Shown here: positions 408-18,995 of the stretch, piece after piece
Layout: the number at the start of each line of letters is the position of its first letter
Position numbering within the stretch: the stretch's first letter is position 1
NCBI GenBank assembly: GCA_002794465.1
Contig: MTSL01000077.1
Coordinates: forward strand, 28,466-49,171
Direction of reading: 5' to 3'
DNA length: 20,706 nt
Source: Paramicrosporidium saccamoebae KSL3
Lineage: Eukaryota > Fungi > Cryptomycota
Translations under genes and position numbers: made by a program
The notes under the pieces: generated by a model
Seen by the model: only the letters and a program-made list of their open reading frames with translations
What the model was told of the DNA's origin: nothing
Database searches by the model: none

Positions 408-1958
408 ATGTTCAACATTGCTTACGTAATATGCTGGTTTTCTACCGCCCTCTGCTTGGTTATTAACTCCAGTGTTAGCGAACTTGTTCTTGGAAATGCA
501 CCGCATACAACACTTCACATACTTTTCTCAGCAGTTTGCAATCAAAATTTTGGCAAATTCCTTTCGAGATGGCTAGCGACGGACCTTGCGTCTGTACAGG
601 ACATTTACAACACTTCCTGTCAGCAGTGGACCGCTGAACACCTCCAGTGGATTATCCCTTTCGCACAAAACTCGCCACTGTATTTGAGGGATCTGCTCTT
701 CTCTTCAGCGTGCTTAAAAGCAGCTCCCAAAGACATTAATGTCTATGAGCACCTATCCCAGAGCATGATTCCGTTTAGATTGCGGAAAAGGTCGAAAGCC
801 TGGGATCAAAAGCTATGGGGAAGGCTGTTGGAATACTTGCCACCGGAATATTCGTCGTCATGGTGCAAATGGGCGCCTTTCCGAAATGAGAAATGGCTCA
901 AGTCTTTTGATCTTCCTTTTCATCTTTCGCTAGAGTGTCTCACTACTAAATATTCCAAAAGAGATTCGGTAATCAAATATACGATTGACCAGATTCCCAC
1001 AGTGCCAGCCTCGTCCTTGTCAAGACTCATAATCGAACTCGACAAAATCAAAGGAAGGACATTGCCTGGACTCCGAAAAGCTGTGCGTTATGCTGCATGC
1101 AACCCGACAGGAGAAACTCTTTTCCATAAACTGAATGAATGGGCTATTGGGTGTAGGCACCACGGCACTCTAAATAATGAAGGGATTTCGATGCTCGTTA
1201 AAAGGACCATGTTGCAGAGGGGAGAGTTGCTTATCCTTGCCTTGAGGCTGTTATTGAAAAAGCTGGGTATGAAAGAGACCAGTAGAAGGCTGAGGGAATT
1301 CACCAATCCTGGCCATGTAACGATGCCAAGATCGTTGCAGCTGGTAGCGCTTTATGGGGAAAATATGGACGAAACATTAGCAACTAGTCAAGAGTTTTTT
1401 TCATTCTTTAACATTGATCATGACGAATTCCTGCTTGAGAGAGTATCAAATAATTTCTGGGCGAGCAACATGGACCGGTTTTACGAAATGCCGTTGACGT
1501 GGAGACTGCGATACTATAGAAAGAATATGATATTCGGCGCAATGACCACCACAAGTGTGGAGCTTGACCAAACGTGTCCGACGCTTTACGCACTGGGAGT
1601 TTTCGGCTCTGAACAATCAATCCAAGAGGCCATCAAGCAAAAAGTATACTCAACCAACGGCATGTCCATAAGCACTGATTGCACTGGTGTTATCACTATA
1701 GACTCAATTGACAACGACAACTTGACACTGGATTCAATTCTTACCATGATGATCTACGGGCTAATTAGATTTGGCCGCTTTGTAGCGCTCCTCGATAGCA
1801 AGGTCTGTAGAGACCTACACGCCGATTCCGCACTGGCAAAATATTTGGGCGATGCCATTGATAGGACTCACAATGAATGGACTCTGGATTTTGTTTTTAG
1901 AGGGACTGATTTCTGTTCCCTGTTCTCGACGCAACATGCCATCAAAGGTGATCAATAA
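408..1958 (+). CDS. Hypothetical protein, 516 aa, apparently intronless, possible signal peptide
   Basis: Long uninterrupted ATG-initiated ORF with AT-rich flanks. Hydrophobic N-terminus (MFNIAYVICWFSTALCLVINS). No family motif recognised. Confidence 0.75.
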   Translation: MFNIAYVICWFSTALCLVINSSVSELVLGNAPHTTLHILFSAVCNQNFGKFLSRWLATDLASVQDIYNTSCQQWTAEHLQWIIPFAQNSPLYLRDLLFSSACLKAAPKDINVYEHLSQSMIPFRLRKRSKAWDQKLWGRLLEYLPPEYSSSWCKWAPFRNEKWLKSFDLPFHLSLECLTTKYSKRDSVIKYTIDQIPTVPASSLSRLIIELDKIKGRTLPGLRKAVRYAACNPTGETLFHKLNEWAIGCRHHGTLNNEGISMLVKRTMLQRGELLILALRLLLKKLGMKETSRRLREFTNPGHVTMPRSLQLVALYGENMDETLATSQEFFSFFNIDHDEFLLERVSNNFWASNMDRFYEMPLTWRLRYYRKNMIFGAMTTTSVELDQTCPTLYALGVFGSEQSIQEAIKQKVYSTNGMSISTDCTGVITIDSIDNDNLTLDSILTMMIYGLIRFGRFVALLDSKVCRDLHADSALAKYLGDAIDRTHNEWTLDFVFRGTDFCSLFSTQHAIKGDQ

Positions 1959-7059: not shown

Positions 7060-7503
7060 TCATAGCTTTGCGTGGAGAAACGGACTAGAGCGTCGTCCAC
7101 AGAACGATACCAATTCTAGAATCATCACCTGGGCACCTTCTTCGTATCGCTGTCCCTCGCTGACCATCACCTCTCTTACCATGTATGTGCCATTCTCTAA
7201 TCCGTCTGGTGCCTTCATCCGCATCGGCGCACTATCTGATTCATTTGGATCCTTCATCTGCATCAGCGCACTTTTGGATCCATTTGGCACTTTCGCTTCC
7301 ATCAATGATTTGTCCATATCTGTAAACATTGTATATCCGGATGCCCGCCTTGCGACTAGCAGCAGTTCGTTATTACGAACAATGTCACCCCGTTGAGTAA
7401 AGACTTGCTCCACGACTATTGGAGAATGCGCAGTGATTACCCAGAACTTTCCAGACGCAGAGACAACAGACGCAACAATAGTGACCAGTACGATAAAAAG
7501 CAT
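7060..7503 (-). CDS. Small predicted secreted protein, 147 aa, lipoyl/biotinyl-like barrel-sandwich pattern, ends in AKL
   Basis: Hydrophobic leader MLFIVLVTIVASVVSA. Half-motifs VVEQVFTQRGDIVRNNELLLV and APDG..GTYMVREVMVSEGQRYEEGAQVMILE resemble the two halves of the biotinyl/lipoyl fold. Paralogous to 7640-8006. Confidence 0.7.
   Translation of the reverse strand: MLFIVLVTIVASVVSASGKFWVITAHSPIVVEQVFTQRGDIVRNNELLLVARRASGYTMFTDMDKSLMEAKVPNGSKSALMQMKDPNESDSAPMRMKAPDGLENGTYMVREVMVSEGQRYEEGAQVMILELVSFCGRRSSPFLHAKL
7212..7289 (-). repeat. In-frame 39-bp tandem duplication within the 7060-7503 CDS
   Basis: 7212-7250 versus 7251-7289 are 31/39 identical; protein PNGSKSALMQMKD / PNESDSAPMRMKA. Confidence 0.85.
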
Positions 7504-12144: not shown

Positions 12145-13876
12145 ATGAATCATGCGTTGACGCCATCGACTCTTGACAGGCTGGAGTATCAAAGGGAGCT
12201 GTGTGAGGATAATTCTGTTGGCGAATACTTGCTTAATCGGGCAATTGGTTTCGAAGCGCCTACTGTGGCCCGACAGGCTGCCCGGAGGCAGTACGTCAAT
12301 ATTCCACCTAGCGAGACATTGTACGAACAAGAATTTCCTGCAAGTCTAAAGCGTTTTTCTCTAACTGGAAGAGCATGCCATGCCATAATGTTTTGACTGT
12401 TAGTACTTGATTGGTTTTGGGAGGAGCAGTCACTCTGTCATGATATTCAACGTGTCTTTCACTGGAGCGCCCAGAACAGCAGACAACTTCTTTACGCTCA
12501 GAAATGAGGTGTTGCTCTGTGCGGGCACAGAAAATCTCTGTCGCGATTTCTGTCTATTCACGCCCGACGATCGCTTCGTACTCTGCAGTGGGGGATTGAC
12601 GTTATAGATTATTGTTGCATCGGCAGAGTCTTCAAACAACACATTTAATGTCGAGCCAGAGAGGCCCCCGAATAGTAACCCACACTCGCTAACAGGTCTA
12701 TCCAGTCTTGACGATGTCCGGTTTCATTCCATTGACATAATGACAGGAAAAGTCGTAGACCGCATAAAGTTTACTCGTGACTACATCCTGCTCTCTAACT
12801 ATGCTGGGGTTTCAATGAACGGCAGAAAATTGGCCATAGTTTCTCTACAAAATCAGCTGATCAAGATTTATGAAATTGATCACAAAGGACGGTTTAATGC
12901 GAAGCAAATCGTCGGGTACAGCCTTTACGGAGATGATTACGAAGAAGTTTCTGGCAAGCCCTTGTTGGGGTTTAGACAGCGTCTCATGTCGTATCTGTAT
13001 CGAAACGCCCTGGAAAAGGAAAATCCGCAATTATCGGTGCGACTGTTGTATAATAACTGGGAAATTGTTGAAAATCTGTGCATTTCCCGAGTCCAATTTC
13101 TGGACGACGCGCATTTGCTGATCAAACTAACTTGTCCAGAGTCGCTTTCGGTGAGATCGCGAGCAATGTCCGACAGTGTTCTTCAAAACACTGCATTCTT
13201 TGTTGTATATAATCTTCAGGACACTCAAATCGAATGCTTCCACCGCAGCACCAGCCAGGTATAGATTTTTTTAACAAGTCCCTAATTCTAGTAGGAATTG
13301 TACGAGGCTGTTCGGGACTACAATGACTATCTTCGTGTCGTCTCTGCAACGGATCCCACCTCGGATCATGGCATATCGTGGCAGTCCACCCCATCAACGG
13401 ATATTTATGAAAGACAAGTTTGGGAGCGCAATGTGCAATTGCTCGCTGCCTCTCGACCAGCACAGGGAGATTTGTATGCCGCCAAGAGATTGCTGCTTTC
13501 GTTGCCGTACTCGCCCCAGACATACTCGGAATCTCCTTACTTGGATCCCAGCATCTTTAGATTCGATGAAAGATCAGTGTCATCCTCAGAGAGACAAAGG
13601 AGTGCCGCCGATTTCCCAGTTCGGTTCTTTTCAAGACGGAGTGATCGGGTAGCATTCCGATTGAATAGCGGTTCCTGTCCCGATACAGCCCCTCCGTCGT
13701 CCAACCCGTACCGTGTCAAGTAACTCGTCAGCGTCACTCTAACATTTTGTAGAAAATACACACAATGGATATTTCATCCATATCTCCCGCTAGTAATTTC
13801 GTCTCAACACACTTTGATTCGTTCCAATACGGTAAATATCCACTACAAGCCATCCCATTCGAGAGGTATCCAATAA
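12145..13876 (+). CDS. DET1: DET1 (de-etiolated 1) homolog, CUL4-DDB1 associated, 533 aa; exons 12145-12372, 12404-12577, 12608-13258, 13295-13719, 13753-13876
   Basis: Colinear matches to metazoan/plant DET1 motifs: LKRFSLTGR|YLIGF, NLCRDFCLFT, LAIVSLQNQLIKI, QFLDDAHLLIK, FFVVYN, LPYSPQTYSESPYLDPSIFRFD, FPVRFFSR, IFHPYLPLVIS. Introns of 31 (GC-AG), 30, 36 and 33 nt. Confidence 0.93.
12373..12403 (+). other. GC-AG intron, 31 nt, in DET1
   Basis: gcatgc...ctgttag; removal gives TGR|YLIGF, matching DET1 DGRYFIAF. Confidence 0.8.
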
Positions 13877-13950
13877 AAGTCACGCCATTTTTTTCTCATC
13901 CAATGGACTGAAGCGTATTAGATGGCCGCCTCCGGTCAGTCTGGCGTACG

Positions 13951-14420
13951 ATGGAGTTTAGAAGAAGTGTTCCTGGCACTATTATATTTGTCCTCTTAGC
14001 CCTGATTCACCTTGTACACTTTTCCTTTCCTTTGCTAAAATTTACTAGGATGCGTTCTATGAGATAGTAAGGTCTATCTGGGACTGGGAGTACCTTGACT
14101 GGGTGGCCCTTCTTGCCGAAATCCTTCAAGTCTTAGTCTTTGTCGTCTACGTTTTTATGATCTTCTTTCCCATCAAGACTTTTGTCGGGCGAATCTCGGT
14201 TGCTTTTGTCTTTGCCTTGAACTTTGTAAGCAACTTGACAGCGTTTATCGTGCTGTACCAGGCACGGAGGATGGTCGATCTGGTGGTCTTTATGTTAGCA
14301 GCGTTAGATTTAATTATTGTCCTTGTGCTGCTCATTAATCCCCGCGGACGGGTGGCCAAGGTGACACCCTTCTATGCAGTAATGGACAGCCATATGTCGC
14401 AAAACAGCCCCGCAAAGTAA
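13951..14420 (+). CDS. 4TM family member A, 144 aa; exons 13951-14013, 14049-14420
   Basis: MEFRRSVPGTIIFVLLALIHL|DAFYE..., one 35-nt phase-0 GT-AG intron, four hydrophobic segments, C-terminal KVTPFY. Confidence 0.82.
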
Positions 14421-14632
14421 AAAATTATTATTCTGGTTGGTGTGAAAATGTGTTATTAGAGACAATATCCGCCTGTTGCATGGCGGGAGCATAACTGTGA
14501 CGTAGAGGCAGAGGATGATTAGTTGGGTATATGACGTAGAGGGTTGATTAGTTGCTGGGTATTTGAGGACAGTGAGATGTGTATCCATACTATTCTAGGA
14601 TTAGCAGTGAACAACCCCCCTTCCCGTCCGTG

Positions 14633-14654
14633 GTATTATCCCCACTACGCGACA
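14633..14654 (+). repeat. Dispersed motif copy 4
   Basis: 22/22 identical to positions 2-23; preceded by ttcccgtc, as is the copy near 9061-9102. Confidence 0.8.
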
Positions 14655-14919
14655 TAACCACGGACACGTACTTTGTCATTTTTTTGTGGGAGCAGGGAAC
14701 TGTTTATTATCAACTGCCTTTTACGGGTAAAATCTCAACTAGCTACCCCATTCGAAGATCTGGCTTGAAAGTATGCATGGTTCAACTAATTGGTCGCAAC
14801 AGGAATCACCCAATAGACTGAACAAAATTTAGCAATGTGATTGGTTCCAAGTACCATGTCCAATGACTAGGTTTAAATGTATATACTACAAGATCCCAGC
14901 GAGTCGTCCAAGAGCCACA

Positions 14920-15395
14920 ATGAGCGAAGTAAAGAGAAGTGTTGGAGGGACGGTGCTGTTTGTGACTATGGCCTTGGTCCTTTTGGTAATCACGACTTTC
15001 TAGGCTAACTAATAGGCCTCATTCATTGAGATCATTCAAGACTTGATTTACAATCGATTCCGGGCTCTCTGGGGCAACATCCTTGGCCTTATTATTTTCC
15101 CAATGATACTTCTCATGCTCTTTGTGCACTTTAATTATCGCACGCTTCGCATCGCCGTACCTCCCCATGGCTGTTTATAATTTCATAGAGTGGCGTTGTT
15201 TTCATAGTAGGAGCTGTGCTACGCTTAATCTTTTTCCTTGTCATGCTATTCCAGTATGGGATCTATTCTGGAACAAGTGCTTCAGTCATGTTCCCCATGC
15301 TGACTGCGGGAATTGCACTGTGCATGAAGTCTGACTCCAAGCTAGCGCCCGTTTTGCCCTTTTACAAAGATCCTTTAGTGGAATCGCCAGTGTAA
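14920..15395 (+). CDS. 4TM family member B, 137 aa; exons 14920-14985, 15016-15156, 15189-15395 (absent from the ORF track)
   Basis: MSEVKRSVGGTVLFVTMALVLL|ASF...TLRIA|SGVV...APVLPFY; phase-0 introns of 30 and 32 nt. Confidence 0.85.
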
Positions 15396-15595
15396 ATAAT
15401 AGTGGCATTGTACATAGTAAAATGATAAAAATTGTGAGATTGAAAGTAAAGTTTGGGTCCTTGGTTGTATATATGCTCTTGCATAGTAATGTCATCTCTA
15501 TCGTGCCTTGTCGTGCTTAATCAGTGATTGGATACCTTGTGATGCACCCAATGAGCGCTCGTGGACTTAAAGCCTCGGCCATCCTCGAACTCGTG

Positions 15596-16092
15596 ATGCG
15601 AAGGATTGAGCGAAGTATTGGTGGCACTTTTTTGTTTGTCCTTATCGTTCTACTAGAGCTAGTACATCCAACCAACGTTTTTAAATATGTAGCAATATGT
15701 AATCTGGTTCGTCAGGGTGCTGTGTAACTTTCGCGAGATTCTTGAATCAAGTCCGATCTATGCGCTAACAAGGACAATTACTGGCATTGCAACAACGCTT
15801 TCCGTCCTTGTCTTGTTCACTATGCTCATTGTTCCTATCCGACGACGCATTCCCCGCTATATGGTAACCTTTAATGGCGTGATCTGATTTTTAGATATCC
15901 GGTGTATTTCTTCTGACCACATTGGCATCGCTTGAAGCGTTTGTAAAAAGTGCCATTAAAGATGGCTACACGGGTGATGTGGCAGCTCGAGGATTTGCCC
16001 GATTACTGCTGGTAGGAGTCATGTGCTTGCCCATTACGCATTGGCTAAACATTGTCACGCCATTCTGTGTAGTCGGAGCCAAAGAAGAGTGA
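15596..16092 (+). CDS. 4TM family member C, 144 aa; exons 15596-15661, 15693-15863, 15895-16092 (upstream in-frame ATGs at 15542 and 15551 also possible)
   Basis: MRRIERSIGGTFLFVLIVLLEL|QYV...PIRRRIPRYM|ISG...YTGDVAA...NIVTPF; two 31-nt phase-0 introns. Confidence 0.85.
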
Positions 16093-16434
16093 ATAAGGTG
16101 AATGGGGGGAGTGAAGGGAAAATATCAAGACTTATCAAGGAGACAACAAAAAACAGAAAAAGAGCCAACTAGTCACTACAGTAACTATCAAACTAATTGT
16201 GAGATTTTATATATGGATCAAGACCCCCCCCAATAAACGATTTATGCTACACACTGATTACTATACATCCTGCATTGGTTATTAAACGCTGGTCACTGAA
16301 TAATCCCACTTTAAACTAATCAGTTTGCATGGCTCTCCATCGCGTCTGTTACTGGACTTGAGCCCAACTACCAATCAGATCAGTTCATGCGATTCTTGAT
16401 TGGATAGACCCTTTCTCAGATCCTGAAGTCCACA

Positions 16435-16845
16435 ATGAATGAGATACAGAGGAGCCTAGGAGGCACTGTCCTCTTCATCGCCCTGATCTTGATTGAGATA
16501 GAATCTGCCATTCAGATTATTGGAAAAATTGCCTCCATCCGCAAATGGCCCCTAATGGAGACGGTTGTAGGCATTACCACACTCATATCGGTCCTCACTC
16601 TAACCATCTTACTTCTCTTTCCCATCAGATTCCGCCTCCCCCGTTTTATTGCTGCAGCAGTGCTGTTGGCTACAATGATTATTGATGCAGACTATTTTGT
16701 GAGGCATCTCATCATGAAGATATATAAAGGGGATGTGGCGGCAACCATTTTAATAAGAGGCATAGCTTCAATAGCGCTGTGCATGCCCATTTCATCGGTA
16801 ATCAGTGACGTGACGCCATTCATAGAGCGACCCGTCCACGAATGA
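16435..16845 (+). CDS. 4TM family member D, 136 aa, intronless
   Basis: MNEIQRSLGGTVLF...PIRFRLPRF...YKGDVAA...SDVTPF; closest to member C. Confidence 0.85.
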   Translation: MNEIQRSLGGTVLFIALILIEIESAIQIIGKIASIRKWPLMETVVGITTLISVLTLTILLLFPIRFRLPRFIAAAVLLATMIIDADYFVRHLIMKIYKGDVAATILIRGIASIALCMPISSVISDVTPFIERPVHE

Positions 16846-17123
16846 ATCCTAAAATAGTTGTTCTTTATCCAATAAATAGCGCCGTGCAGACCCATTTCAT
16901 CGACACCAGAGAGCGATCTGTTTATATCCGATCAGTAGCGCTGTGCATGCCTGTCGCTAGAAACCAGCAATATGGCACCAGAGAGCGGCCCGTTTACTAA
17001 TAAACTGGAGCAATTGCTTTATATCCGATCAATAGAGCTTTGCTTGCTCACGACATCAGAGAGCGGCCTGTTCATGAGTAGACCTTGAAATAGTTGTTTT
17101 CTAATTGACCAATAGCGATTGTC
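16769..17123 (+). repeat. Degenerate tandem copies of member D's 3' coding end and 3' UTR
   Basis: caatagcgctgtgcatgcc-like starts at 16769, ~16875, 16933, 17030 and 17110, with recurring cagagagcg, tttatatccgat and aaatagttgtt blocks. Confidence 0.75.
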
Positions 17124-17130
17124 GGTCGGT

Positions 17131-17620
17131 ATGGAGTACACCCGGAGCAGTCTTGGCACGGCCTTGACCATGTTAGTATCCCTAAATCTTTTTGTACGAC
17201 ATCCTAATATTTCTAAATATACAGATGCTAGCTCCGTTATCGTTTGACTGGTCGCGTATCACCTGGTGGGGACCAGGTCTGCTCTCCACTCTTGCCTGCT
17301 TCAGTTACGGAATCAACTTTCTTGCCACCGTCTGCCTCCAGTGGATACCCGCTTGGGAAAACTCGCTGCTCTTGGTCATCCTCCATGGTCTTTTTGCGAG
17401 CAACATTATAATCAATGCGTTGCTATGTGTGCCCATACTGGGTTGGGACAAGGACTTGCTATTGTCGCGAGTAAATATACTGTTCTTTGATGGTGTCATA
17501 CTGTATGCCTTGGCAAAGGGACCATTGTCCCGGTGGGCATTTGTGCTGCCCCATCATGGCAAGGAAGACATTATCCCGACGAGTAGAAAGGCTTTTCTTA
17601 TAGGACAGGAGGTCCTGTAG
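17131..17620 (+). CDS. 4TM family member E, 152 aa; exons 17131-17193, 17225-17620
   Basis: MEYTRSSLGTALTMLVSLNLF|MLAP..., 31-nt phase-0 intron after codon 21 as in member A, hydrophobic segments, C-terminal FVLPH. Confidence 0.78.
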
Positions 17621-17652: not shown

Positions 17653-18995
17653 TTAGGTAAATGGACGGAATTCGGACTCTTTGGGCGGCACCGTGTCCGT
17701 GTTAACTGAAATCCGCCGCTCGAATACCCCGTAGGCCTTGGGCTTGAGCTCCAGCATCGTCCCCAGTGGCATTTCAACGTTGGGAATTTCCTTGTTTGGG
17801 ATTTCCAAAAAGTAGGCATATATGCATTGCAGCACAGAGAGATCGGCAACAATCAATACGTCTTTAGGGTCTCTTTCCAATTCTAACATGACATTTTCCA
17901 ACCGAACAGCCAAATCGTGATATGATTCGGCTCTCTGATAGCGGTGATAGTACCGATCTGCTTGGTGTGCCGCATATTCATCGGGATATTGTCGCTCGAC
18001 CTCTTCAGCAGTGAGATTTTCCACAACGCCGCCATCGAGTCCTCGCAACTGGGGCTTTGTTAAGAGTTCATGGCCCTTGAATACTTTGCCAATTACACAG
18101 CTAATCAAACTAGTCTCTGTCCACACCGACAAAGAGTCAATGTCTCCCACGCTGGCGAGGTACCTTTGAGCAGGACCCACCGCGTCCTGCACATTGAGAG
18201 CCTTCCTCGGCAAGGGAAAGAGAAAGATTCTCTTTGATCCGTGATGCAAATTCATCAAGTAATACAGCATCCTCGATGGCAGATAGCCTCTAATCTGATT
18301 TGCGACAATCTTCTTTCCCCCACCCAACAATCTAATAAATGGATACTCATATTCCTCTATTGGAGCTCCAACCGGAACGTAATACGGTCGGTAATAGTCG
18401 AGTCGGCGGTTGAAATCATTAGTTGCCTGTTCGCATTCGACGTTGGCATATTCAGGACAGGTTAGTCGGAGCTCCTTGATATGTTCAATGACGGCTACTT
18501 CATGACCGTGACTGTAAACGCATTCGAGGAACATTGTGCGAATGCCAGACTTGGTTAGCCGATTGACAATAGTTTTGCGACGTTGAGGCTGCGTGTTGGA
18601 AGCATCTAAAATGGCCACCTGACCGCCGTCGGGGGCTTCGAGCCATCGGACGAGGTCATCCAGTGCACTGTCGGCAATCTCTGTCCTCTTTCGTAAATTT
18701 TCCTGGTTGTCTAGAGTGCTATAGTCATGAAACCATTAGTACTGGCATCGAAGAATTCGGCAGTTAGATTCTCTCCCACCATTCGACTGCGGTAATGTGC
18801 CACGCTAAAATTGCGTGTCTTCACTCCCAGCCAGCGGAGGTAACGACAGAGATTACGAGCGGTGAATGTCTTTCCACTTGCTGGCAATCCGACCATTACA
18901 ACGGCAATATTTCCAGCATGCCATTTTTCTTCCCCCACATTCATGCTGTGCTTGCCAATCACCTAAATCGGTGTGACGTCTATAGTAAATACCAT
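17653..18995 (-). CDS. 6-phosphofructo-2-kinase/fructose-2,6-bisphosphatase family protein (YLR345W-like), 426 aa; exons 18995-18993, 18962-18743, 18710-17653
   Basis: WHAGNIAVVMVGLPASGKT (P-loop), RYLRWLGVKT, ILDASNT..RR, IRGYLPSRMLYYLMNL, and PGM-like domain residues LRGLDGG..RYQRAESYHDLAVRLE. Introns of 30 and 32 nt. The first exon (ATG only) is less certain. Confidence 0.9.

Follow-up and report, generated by a model that had tools for sequence, protein, structure and literature searches.

The region at positions 13951-17620 of the window, i.e. the whole stretch of 20,706 nt of DNA that was analysed, contains five real, spliced and co-oriented protein-coding genes (A to E), which form one previously undescribed family of integral membrane proteins of about 140 aa. 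In relatives known as uncultured eukaryotes, an older set of these genes, i.e. an A-type and a C/D-type gene and, in some lineages, an E-type gene, occupies the same site, flanked by DET1 and PFK2, and the array in the window grew from it by tandem duplication: the C/D-type gene gave rise to C and D, and B, which is very divergent, was added. The explanation that we consider best, and on the whole probable, is that of a new membrane family, expanded in tandem from an old set and held under purifying selection, whose products would be small subunits assembling into hetero-oligomers in a cellular membrane and acting via a conserved cytosolic face, either in a scaffolding or adaptor role or as accessory subunits of a larger membrane complex.

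The preliminary description had proposed five co-oriented genes of 136-152 aa, mostly hidden unless spliced, and this was confirmed, as all five spliced reading frames are intact and encode proteins of 144, 137, 144, 136 and 152 aa, respectively. Four of them (A, B, C and E) are split by introns of 30-35 nt, all in phase 0 and bounded by GT..AG. On the forward strand, gene A (13951-14420), representing the A-type, consists of exons 13951-14013 and 14049-14420, separated by an intron of 35 nt (14014-14048); gene B (14920-15395), a divergent member on a long branch, of exons 14920-14985, 15016-15156 and 15189-15395, with introns of 30 and 32 nt; and gene C (15596-16092), of the C/D-type, of exons 15596-15661, 15693-15863 and 15895-16092, with both introns being 31 nt long. 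Gene D (16435-16845), likewise of the C/D-type, is an intronless intact ORF, and gene E (17131-17620), representing the distant E-type, comprises exons 17131-17193 and 17225-17620 around an intron of 31 nt. Since in-frame ATGs lie upstream of B (at 14863) and C (at 15545 and 15554), the true N-termini of these two proteins could be longer than modelled.

The gene models are supported by the conservation of the introns in orthologues and by the third-position bias of the mismatches. Orthologous introns occupy the same positions and keep GT..AG, while their lengths differ by non-multiples of 3; the A intron is found at the same place in the orthologue on contig L010, and both C intron positions are kept on L011. 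The intron of E is 61 % identical to its counterpart on contig L001, compared with 88 % for the exons, and exon mismatches favour the third codon position, e.g. 15/7/33 in E and 19/7/45 in D.

Judged from their sequences, A to D are clearly paralogues. Pairwise BLASTP at a database size of 1e7 gave 8e-23 for C-D, 3e-11 for B-D and 8e-6 for A-B, at a low identity of 20-37 % between paralogues, and a profile of A to D, searched against the six-frame translation of the window, matched every exon of these four genes at E-values of 5e-8 to 3e-63 (5e-8 and 3e-35 for the exons of gene A) and nothing else in the window. The similarity of A to D is thus well above what chance would give by both BLASTP and HMM, while the matches of E to the other members were non-significant by either method, and only hhalign aligned it with A to D, over the full length, with a probability of 81 % and a value of 1.3e-5 (given once as P and otherwise as an E-value). 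E also has the N-terminal motif, four helices, a VLPH variant of the C-terminal motif and, as in the family, a phase-0 intron after codon 21, and this gene structure together with the one profile-profile alignment suggests that it is a distant family member.

Every sequence motif reported in the preliminary description was found again, i.e. RSxxGT before TM1, R69 before TM3 and the C-terminal (V/L)(T/L)P(F/H), as well as PIRxRxPR and YxGDVAA in C and D. The family can be defined by a length of about 140 aa, an N-terminal [KRQ]RSxxGT, four TM helices, a TM2-TM3 loop of the form P..[KR]....R and a C-terminal [VIL][TL]PF[Y], and A to D show all of these features. Residues R5, S6, G9, T10, R69, P128 and F129 are conserved family-wide. 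The pair at positions 20 and 108 co-varies, being H/D in the A-type, E/R in C and D and H/N in more distant C/D-types; B lacks this polar TM1/TM4 pair and has L/M there. In the phylogenetic tree, C and D are sisters (support 97/95) and adjoin the C/D-type member of contig L002 (L002_CD), the A clade is separate, and B, which has a long branch, joins the C/D clade with a support of 92/85. Judging by the tree, it is old paralogy rather than fast turnover that accounts for the low identity among the members. An internal 2+2 helix repeat was rejected (hhalign probability 0.8 %).

The AF2 model of A (pLDDT 92.7, pTM 0.84) is a four-helix membrane bundle with helices at residues 7-32, 39-60, 66-90 and 96-116 and strands at 2-5 and 129-132, and that of D (pLDDT 74.7) has the same architecture, with strands at 2-6 and 129-133. 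Hydropathy and charge distribution fit an N-in/C-in topology. Each protein is thus predicted to be a four-helix TM bundle whose N- and C-terminus both lie on the side rich in K/R, presumably the cytosolic one, where the strand immediately preceding RSxxGT is predicted to pair with the C-terminal TPF(Y) strand. In these models, the paired strands and the conserved TM2-TM3 loop (P..K/R....R) would make up the only surface conserved across the family. The correlated mid-membrane TM1/TM4 pair would be a structural contact. Neither a signal peptide nor a large exposed loop was found in the family proteins.

An hmmscan against Pfam-A, with cut-offs of E<=10 for A to E and E<=1 for the 19 alignment members, returned only noise (E >= 0.04), and no PDB sequence was matched at E<=10 in a profile search. 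Foldseek gave best E-values of 0.34 and 0.45 against the PDB, searched with the two models, and of 0.19 against the viral structures of BFVD, with none at E<=0.001 in either. With no Pfam family and no solved structure matched, the initial view that the proteins are assignable to none of MARVEL, LAPTM, claudin or Got1/Sft2 is upheld. Got1/Sft2 proteins (PF04178; Golgi/ER, about 138 aa) resemble the family in size, in their four TM helices and short loops and in having both termini predicted to be cytosolic, but PF04178 was matched by none of the five window proteins or of the 15 other aligned members, and Got1/Sft2 proteins are not known to have an N-terminal RSxxGT, a C-terminal TPFY or terminal strands that are predicted to pair with each other. 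The MARVEL proteins (Nce102, synaptophysin, occludin; PF01284), i.e. four-helix, oligomerising organisers of membrane domains, had been offered earlier as a functional analogy; however, PF01284 was not matched, no MARVEL structure was among the Foldseek matches listed, and the family proteins are smaller. Claudin/PMP22 (PF00822, PF13903) and LAPTM (PF03821) proteins likewise have four TM helices, but the family proteins are much smaller than either and match none of these Pfam entries; in contrast to the W-GLW-C-C signature and large loop 1 of claudins, loop 1 of the family has 6-20 residues without paired cysteines, and no tail carries the PPxY of LAPTM. The best structural neighbour overall was an uncharacterised Edafosvirus protein of 169 aa (BFVD A0A3G4ZVQ1; TMq 0.58, rmsd 3.9 over 137 columns), but with an E-value of 0.19, 9 % identity and no functional information. 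What is new here is a well-defined eukaryotic family with signature motifs, a predicted fold of high confidence without a solved counterpart, three old subtypes, synteny and purifying selection. It is also a tractable target for work on the assembly of very small polytopic proteins by expression and reconstitution.

Among 1.84 billion protein representatives, 17 relatives were identified with a profile that is weighted towards the C/D-type and may have missed more distant named relatives. The source was looked up for ten of the 17, and all ten are known only from JGI or Logan assemblies (metagenome/SRA). As proposed earlier, the family is real and lineage-restricted. When the 19-sequence profile was used in a word-indexed search, hydrophobic words filled up the list of candidates, and P0001 alone was therefore retrieved. 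Two scans of a metagenome contig collection gave no confirmed relatives, the collection therefore evidently lacking these contigs, and an exact look-up of the D protein returned no record. The family could serve as a marker for a eukaryotic lineage seen here almost entirely as metagenome/SRA assemblies.

L002, a metagenome contig of 101 kb, shows the gene order of the window, i.e. ELP1-RNasePH-UBC-EB1-CAF17-DET1-(A-type, C/D-type, E-type)-PFK2-HPPD, and contig L013 has CAF17-DET1-(A-type, C/D-type)-PFK2, with the E-type gene absent at this locus. DET1 is followed by family genes on L002, L013 and L010 alike. A second locus from the same metagenome (L007), the two loci probably belonging to one organism, harbours an A-type gene and then a three-exon member; a third gene there, tested as E-like, was not significant. 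The orthologue of A on L010 has 66 % protein identity, no orthologue of B was found, C has orthologues in P0008/L011 and in a fragment on L001, D is 85 % identical to P0001, and E has orthologues on two contigs, with aa identities of 88 % (L001) and 45 % (L002). These orthologues are one-to-one and syntenic in at least three lineages. While the relatives have two to three family members per locus, the window has five, and since they keep the A-type, the C/D-type and sometimes the E-type at the same site, it is the lineage of the window that expanded the old set.

Compared with the orthologues, dN/dS was 0.14 for D, 0.16 for E (L001) and 0.085 for the 3' end of C, and 0.036 for the end of the neighbouring PFK2. 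Values of 0.09-0.16 indicate that the array genes are under purifying selection rather than diversifying rapidly. The preliminary description had read the array as a rapidly diversifying, lineage-specific family at the host interface of an intracellular parasite, a reading with which the paralogue identity of 20-37 %, the tandem arrangement, the absence of the family from annotated genomes and the compact genome with its tiny introns would agree. However, besides the low dN/dS (0.085-0.16 across the three genes), orthologues that are one-to-one and syntenic and a copy number as low as two to five per locus contradict rapid diversification, and no sign of an intracellular parasite or of a host interface was seen in this analysis: the proteins have no signal peptide or large exposed loop, their conserved surface is on the K/R-rich, presumably cytosolic side, the flanks of the array (HPPD, DET1, CAF17 and PFK2) encode ordinary free-living metabolism, and one of the distant members stems from SRR10063240, which two papers on hot-spring metagenomes list among their runs (PMC7692377, PMC8468003) and which was the only one of the sample and assembly accessions to be traced in the literature. 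We therefore regard this reading as very improbable, and, contrary to the first proposal, the array has no bearing on parasite-host interaction. Even further from the evidence is the notion that the region is non-functional, i.e. made up of chance hydrophobic ORFs or decaying pseudogene copies, as might be thought from the stops that four of the five genes hit unless spliced and from the decayed partial copies of D adjoining the array; with intact spliced frames in all five genes, introns kept in position with GT..AG, third-position-biased substitutions, a dN/dS far below 1 and a high-confidence AF2 model against it, it is extremely improbable and effectively refuted.

As regards function, hetero-oligomerisation is plausible, because several lineages keep distinct types as neighbours, as do two loci that probably belong to one organism; this retention of paralogue types side by side could also be explained by slow genome rearrangement, since the whole ELP1 to HPPD block is syntenic. 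It is conceivable, if unlikely, that the A-type, alone or with the C/D- and E-types, forms a small cation (proton/metal) channel or transporter whose path is a ladder of membrane-embedded polar residues. In its favour, the polar sites of the A-type are conserved, i.e. H20 of TM1 in 9 of 10, Q48 of TM2 in 10 of 12 and N83 of TM3 in 10 of 13 members, and D108 of TM4 in all 13 A-type members outside P0016; position 45 of TM2 is E, Q, D or N, the outward loop 1 combines acidic and aromatic residues and has a conserved D-W, and the model of A would place the polar residues inside a tight four-helix bundle. The polar set is, however, not family-wide, as C and D have a salt-bridge-like E/R in place of H/D and B has L/M, and no known channel or transporter was similar by sequence (Pfam, PDB) or by structure (Foldseek against the PDB). 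The bolder version, in which the family would be a new class of small eukaryotic channel or transporter with a proton or metal-cation path through H20, Q48, N83 and D108 of the A-type, and with the co-inherited C/D- and E-types as non-conducting heteromer partners held by cytosolic strand pairing, is somewhat less likely still. Somewhere between these two in our estimation, and rather unlikely, is that the proteins serve a membrane enzyme complex as small accessory or regulatory subunits, as Kei1, ORMDL and Erg28 do, with lipid (sphingolipid) synthesis as one candidate. Kei1, the small subunit of the fungal inositol-phosphorylceramide synthase, is likewise a small, helical membrane protein that works only within a hetero-complex, and gave the best TM-scores among the solved structures listed for the D model (9vj4_B and 9ivc_B; TMq 0.57 and 0.48; Foldseek probability 0.87 for the former); size and the conserved cytosolic face fit as well, and at L007 a TLC/ceramide-synthase-like gene immediately precedes the family genes. 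The Kei1 matches are, however, non-significant (E-values of 1.0-1.1; 1.1 for 9vj4_B) at 9-14 % sequence identity, Kei1 is absent among the 50 matches listed for the better model of A, its Pfam family was not matched, and the adjacency to TLC, absent at the window locus, may be due to chance in such compact genomes. Overall, hetero-oligomeric assemblies acting via the cytosolic face are favoured over a cation-conducting role of the A-type.

The array is preceded by the 3' part of DET1 (de-etiolated 1; 12740-13911, forward strand), with Pfam Det1 matches at 12740-13264 (1.5e-29) and 13298-13723 (2e-24). We infer a last short DET1 exon at about 13765-13911; the piece 13753-13908 has no Pfam match of its own, and a similar ORF follows DET1 on L013. 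A 'KVTPFF' at 13880-13897 was considered as the relic of a sixth member and rejected, as it lies within this putative exon and the matching ORF of L013 lacks the motif. Downstream, a gene for 6-phosphofructo-2-kinase/fructose-2,6-bisphosphatase (PFK2; 17653-18618, reverse strand; Pfam 6PF2K and His_Phos_1) is convergent with E and has the same position and orientation on L001, L002 and L013. Its product is nearest to, yet outside, the sampled fungal phyla, all named matches being fungi at an identity of up to 39 %, and falls within a separate, fully environmental clade that includes GCA_047514055.1. Rfam gave no matches in the window. In the spacer between D and E, a repeat search found three partial copies, all of them decayed, of the final ~25 codons of D (16850-17090, forward strand; repeat families D1-D3), with 60-89 % identity to the reference copies and a spacing of 59-105 nt, which TRF had missed. 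The orthologous spacer of L001 is free of such copies, and D of L001 has an in-frame C-terminal extension where the window has the decayed copies.

The five adjacent genes for small four-helix membrane proteins (A–E) are all on the forward strand and, as the preliminary description had stated, mostly hidden without splicing: in the ORF listing of the window, which is eukaryotic and gene-dense with a G+C content of around 46 % and very short introns, D (16435–16845, 136 aa) is the sole intact ORF of the family, the remainder being in fragments. Gene models were obtained by joining the fragments at GT..AG sites with the intact D protein as a guide, i.e. A (13951–14013 and 14049–14420; 144 aa), B (14920–14985, 15016–15156 and 15189–15395; 137 aa), C (15596–15661, 15693–15863 and 15895–16092; 144 aa) and E (17131–17193 and 17225–17620; 152 aa), and all shared motifs named in that description were found in the window proteins. 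The six array introns (14014–17224) are 30–35 nt long, in phase 0 and start with GTA, with intron 1 placed after codon 21 or 22 in all four split genes (A, B, C and E), and intron 2 at an identical position in B and C. The flanking UBC, EB1, CAF17, DET1, PFK2 (6-phosphofructo-2-kinase/fructose-2,6-bisphosphatase) and HPPD genes are likewise broken into short ORF pieces, and tiny introns therefore appear to be genome-wide, a trait that may be of use in placing the lineage.

Judged by sequence comparison, the similarity among A–D exceeds chance: BLASTP scaled to a database of 1e7 gave 8e-23 for C–D, 3e-11 for B–D, 8e-6 for A–B and 3e-3 for A–D, and a profile of A–D plus one orthologue matched all A–D exons (5e-8 to 3e-63), and nothing more, when the window was translated in all six frames. 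E was not significantly similar to A–D by BLASTP or by the A–D profile. A three-sequence E profile matched the A–D profile over its full length in hhalign (probability 81 %, E 1.3e-5), pairing N79/N83 and D108 as well as the N-terminal motif and, at the C-terminus, xLP, and a 21-codon first exon is common to E and other family genes. Because of this full-length match and the shared first exon, we accept E as a probable distant member, with less certainty than A–D.

When searched against 5.8 billion clustered proteins, D had one match only (P0001, 85 % identical), while exhaustive profile searching with HMMER across 1.84 billion representatives yielded 17 proteins at E≤1e-3; the ten whose sources were checked came solely from JGI metagenomes or Logan SRA assemblies, and none of these ten had an NCBI or UniRef entry. 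The source run of one distant member, SRR10063240, is listed in two hot-spring metagenome papers (PMC7692377, PMC8468003).

The gene order of a 101-kb JGI contig (L002), i.e. ELP1-RNase PH-UBC-EB1-CAF17-DET1-[family]-PFK2(-)-HPPD(-), is identical to that of the window, and the collinear block spans window 1–20706 and L002 1–14400. Its family slot holds three genes: an A-type without intron (P0002), a three-exon C/D-type in which both introns coincide in position with those of C/B, and an E-type with its intron where window E has it. Amino acid identity between the window and L002 is 36 % for A, 31–34 % for C/D and 45 % for E, and 49 % for ELP1, 60 % for RNase PH, 68 % for PFK2, 82–89 % for HPPD and 93 % for UBC. 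A more distant organism (L013) has CAF17-DET1-[A-type P0005, C/D-type]-PFK2. From the metagenome of L002 came a second family locus (L007 9070–12001; also L008, L009 and L012), which on L007 comprises an A-type (P0007) and then a three-exon member, immediately downstream of a TLC/ceramide-synthase-like gene. The small hydrophobic/membrane ORF that follows as third gene did not prove E-like when tested and could not be placed in the family. In the family tree, C and D are sisters (97/95 support) beside the L002 C/D-type and P0012, B joins the C/D clade on a long branch (92/85), and the A-types form a separate group. Tree and synteny therefore show an old pair of A-type and C/D-type genes, with an E-type in some lineages, to which the window lineage has added a tandem duplicate of the C/D gene, and B.

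Orthologues of the end of C, D, E and PFK2, in this order, lie on the related metagenome contig L001 (79–88 % nucleotide identity to the window), and those of A and C on two further such contigs, L010 and L011, respectively. Their introns have identical positions and keep GT..AG, with length differences that are non-multiples of three. In E, the intron is 61 % identical between the orthologues and the exons are 88 % identical. By codon position, exon mismatches number 15/7/33 in E, 28/19/47 in A, 50/21/72 in C and 19/7/45 in D. Nei–Gojobori dN/dS against L001 was 0.085 in the end of C, 0.14 in D and 0.16 in E, as compared with 0.036 in the adjacent PFK2 end; given these low values, purifying selection acts on the array genes, which evolve faster than the housekeeping enzyme yet are not diversifying. 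The small polytopic membrane proteins are a conserved family under constraint, in which distinct old subtypes have been passed on side by side.

Pfam scans of the family returned noise only (E≥0.04), with MARVEL, Got1/Sft2, claudin, LAPTM and Kei1 matches absent from all scanned members, and a PDB sequence profile search gave no matches. AlphaFold2 models of D (5 sequences, pLDDT 74.7) and A (20 sequences, pLDDT 92.7, pTM 0.84) both have four long helices, an N-terminal strand (2–5) and a C-terminal strand (129–132), and hydropathy gives four hydrophobic segments in every protein. The best Foldseek E values against PDB were 0.34 (D model) and 0.45 (A model), the matches being generic helical bundles, among them GPCR fragments, SUR TMD0, ferritins and Kei1 (TMq 0.57, E 1.1); in BFVD the best match was an uncharacterised Edafosvirus protein (E 0.19). 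The family thus cannot be filed within any described one, and we regard it as an orphan family not described before, though ordinary in kind (small tetraspan proteins in a tandem array), which is unusually cleanly defined and has a confident predicted model lacking a structural match. The observation in the preliminary description is confirmed, and its interpretation is supported in part: the lack of a known family holds, whereas the rapid diversification that it proposed is contradicted by the dN/dS values (0.085–0.16).

A carries K/R clusters at its N-terminus, TM2–TM3 loop and C-tail, and loop 1 is acidic. The K/R-rich side of a membrane protein is the inside (the positive-inside rule), and an N-in/C-in topology is therefore predicted. 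All residues conserved family-wide (R5, S6, G9, T10, R69, P128 and F129) are on this predicted inner face. Positions 20/108 are H/D in A-types, E/R in C and D, H/N in distant C/D-types, N/D in the E-type and L/M in B, a correlated change that would fit a TM1–TM4 contact; an internal 2+2 repeat was tested for and none was found.

We propose, with moderate to low confidence, that the subtypes assemble into hetero-oligomers and, with confidence no higher, that these would serve as a scaffold or accessory subunit, acting through their conserved cytosolic face. A-types have additional conserved polar residues within the membrane (H20, E/Q45, Q48, N83 and D108), and a cation path centred on them is conceivable, if unlikely, for a family in which B has L/M at positions 20/108. 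Marginally less probable is a role as accessory subunit to an enzyme of lipid synthesis: the second locus adjoins the ceramide-synthase-like gene, and in the window the neighbours are DET1 and PFK2. The host-interface family of the preliminary description, in genes under purifying selection, seems very improbable, and the analysis gave no sign that the organism is a parasite.

All named relatives of the window PFK2 are fungal, the best from Mortierellomycota and Mucoromycota (38–39 % identity). In the PFK2 tree, the window and L002 fall within a distinct clade with strong support, whose 17 sequences comprise the window, L002, environmental sequences from Logan and ENA, and one NCBI assembly (GCA_047514055.1). 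Contig JBCAWG010013163.1 of this assembly (L006), on which HPPD adjoins PFK2, is the nearest sequence found that comes from a deposited NCBI genome assembly and not from a metagenome (HPPD 67–79 % and PFK2 46 % identical to the window).

The D–E spacer (16850–17090) contains three decayed tandem copies of around the last 25 codons of D, comprising the TM4 end and tail, with a unit spacing of 59–105 nt. On L001 this spacer is around 50 nt long and without the copies, and the D protein has an in-frame repeat-like C-terminal extension (IERPVIEQPVIGRPVYE). CCAAT/ATTGG boxes are enriched in the array spacers (13912–17130), with 12 in 1365 nt versus 49 in the other 19341 nt; each array gene has one at 22–64 nt before its ATG, frequently paired as ATTGG...CCAAT, and they may be a promoter element common to the array or a feature of this genome in general. 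The ORF right before A (13765–13911), probably the last exon of DET1, ends in KVTPFFSHPMD, resembling the family C-terminal VTPF motif; since a similar ORF after DET1 on L013 is without TPF, the likeness looks coincidental. Two other ORFs have no Pfam match, one of 516 aa (408–1958, forward strand) and one of 147 aa (7060–7503, reverse strand), the latter with a hydrophobic N-terminus resembling a signal peptide.
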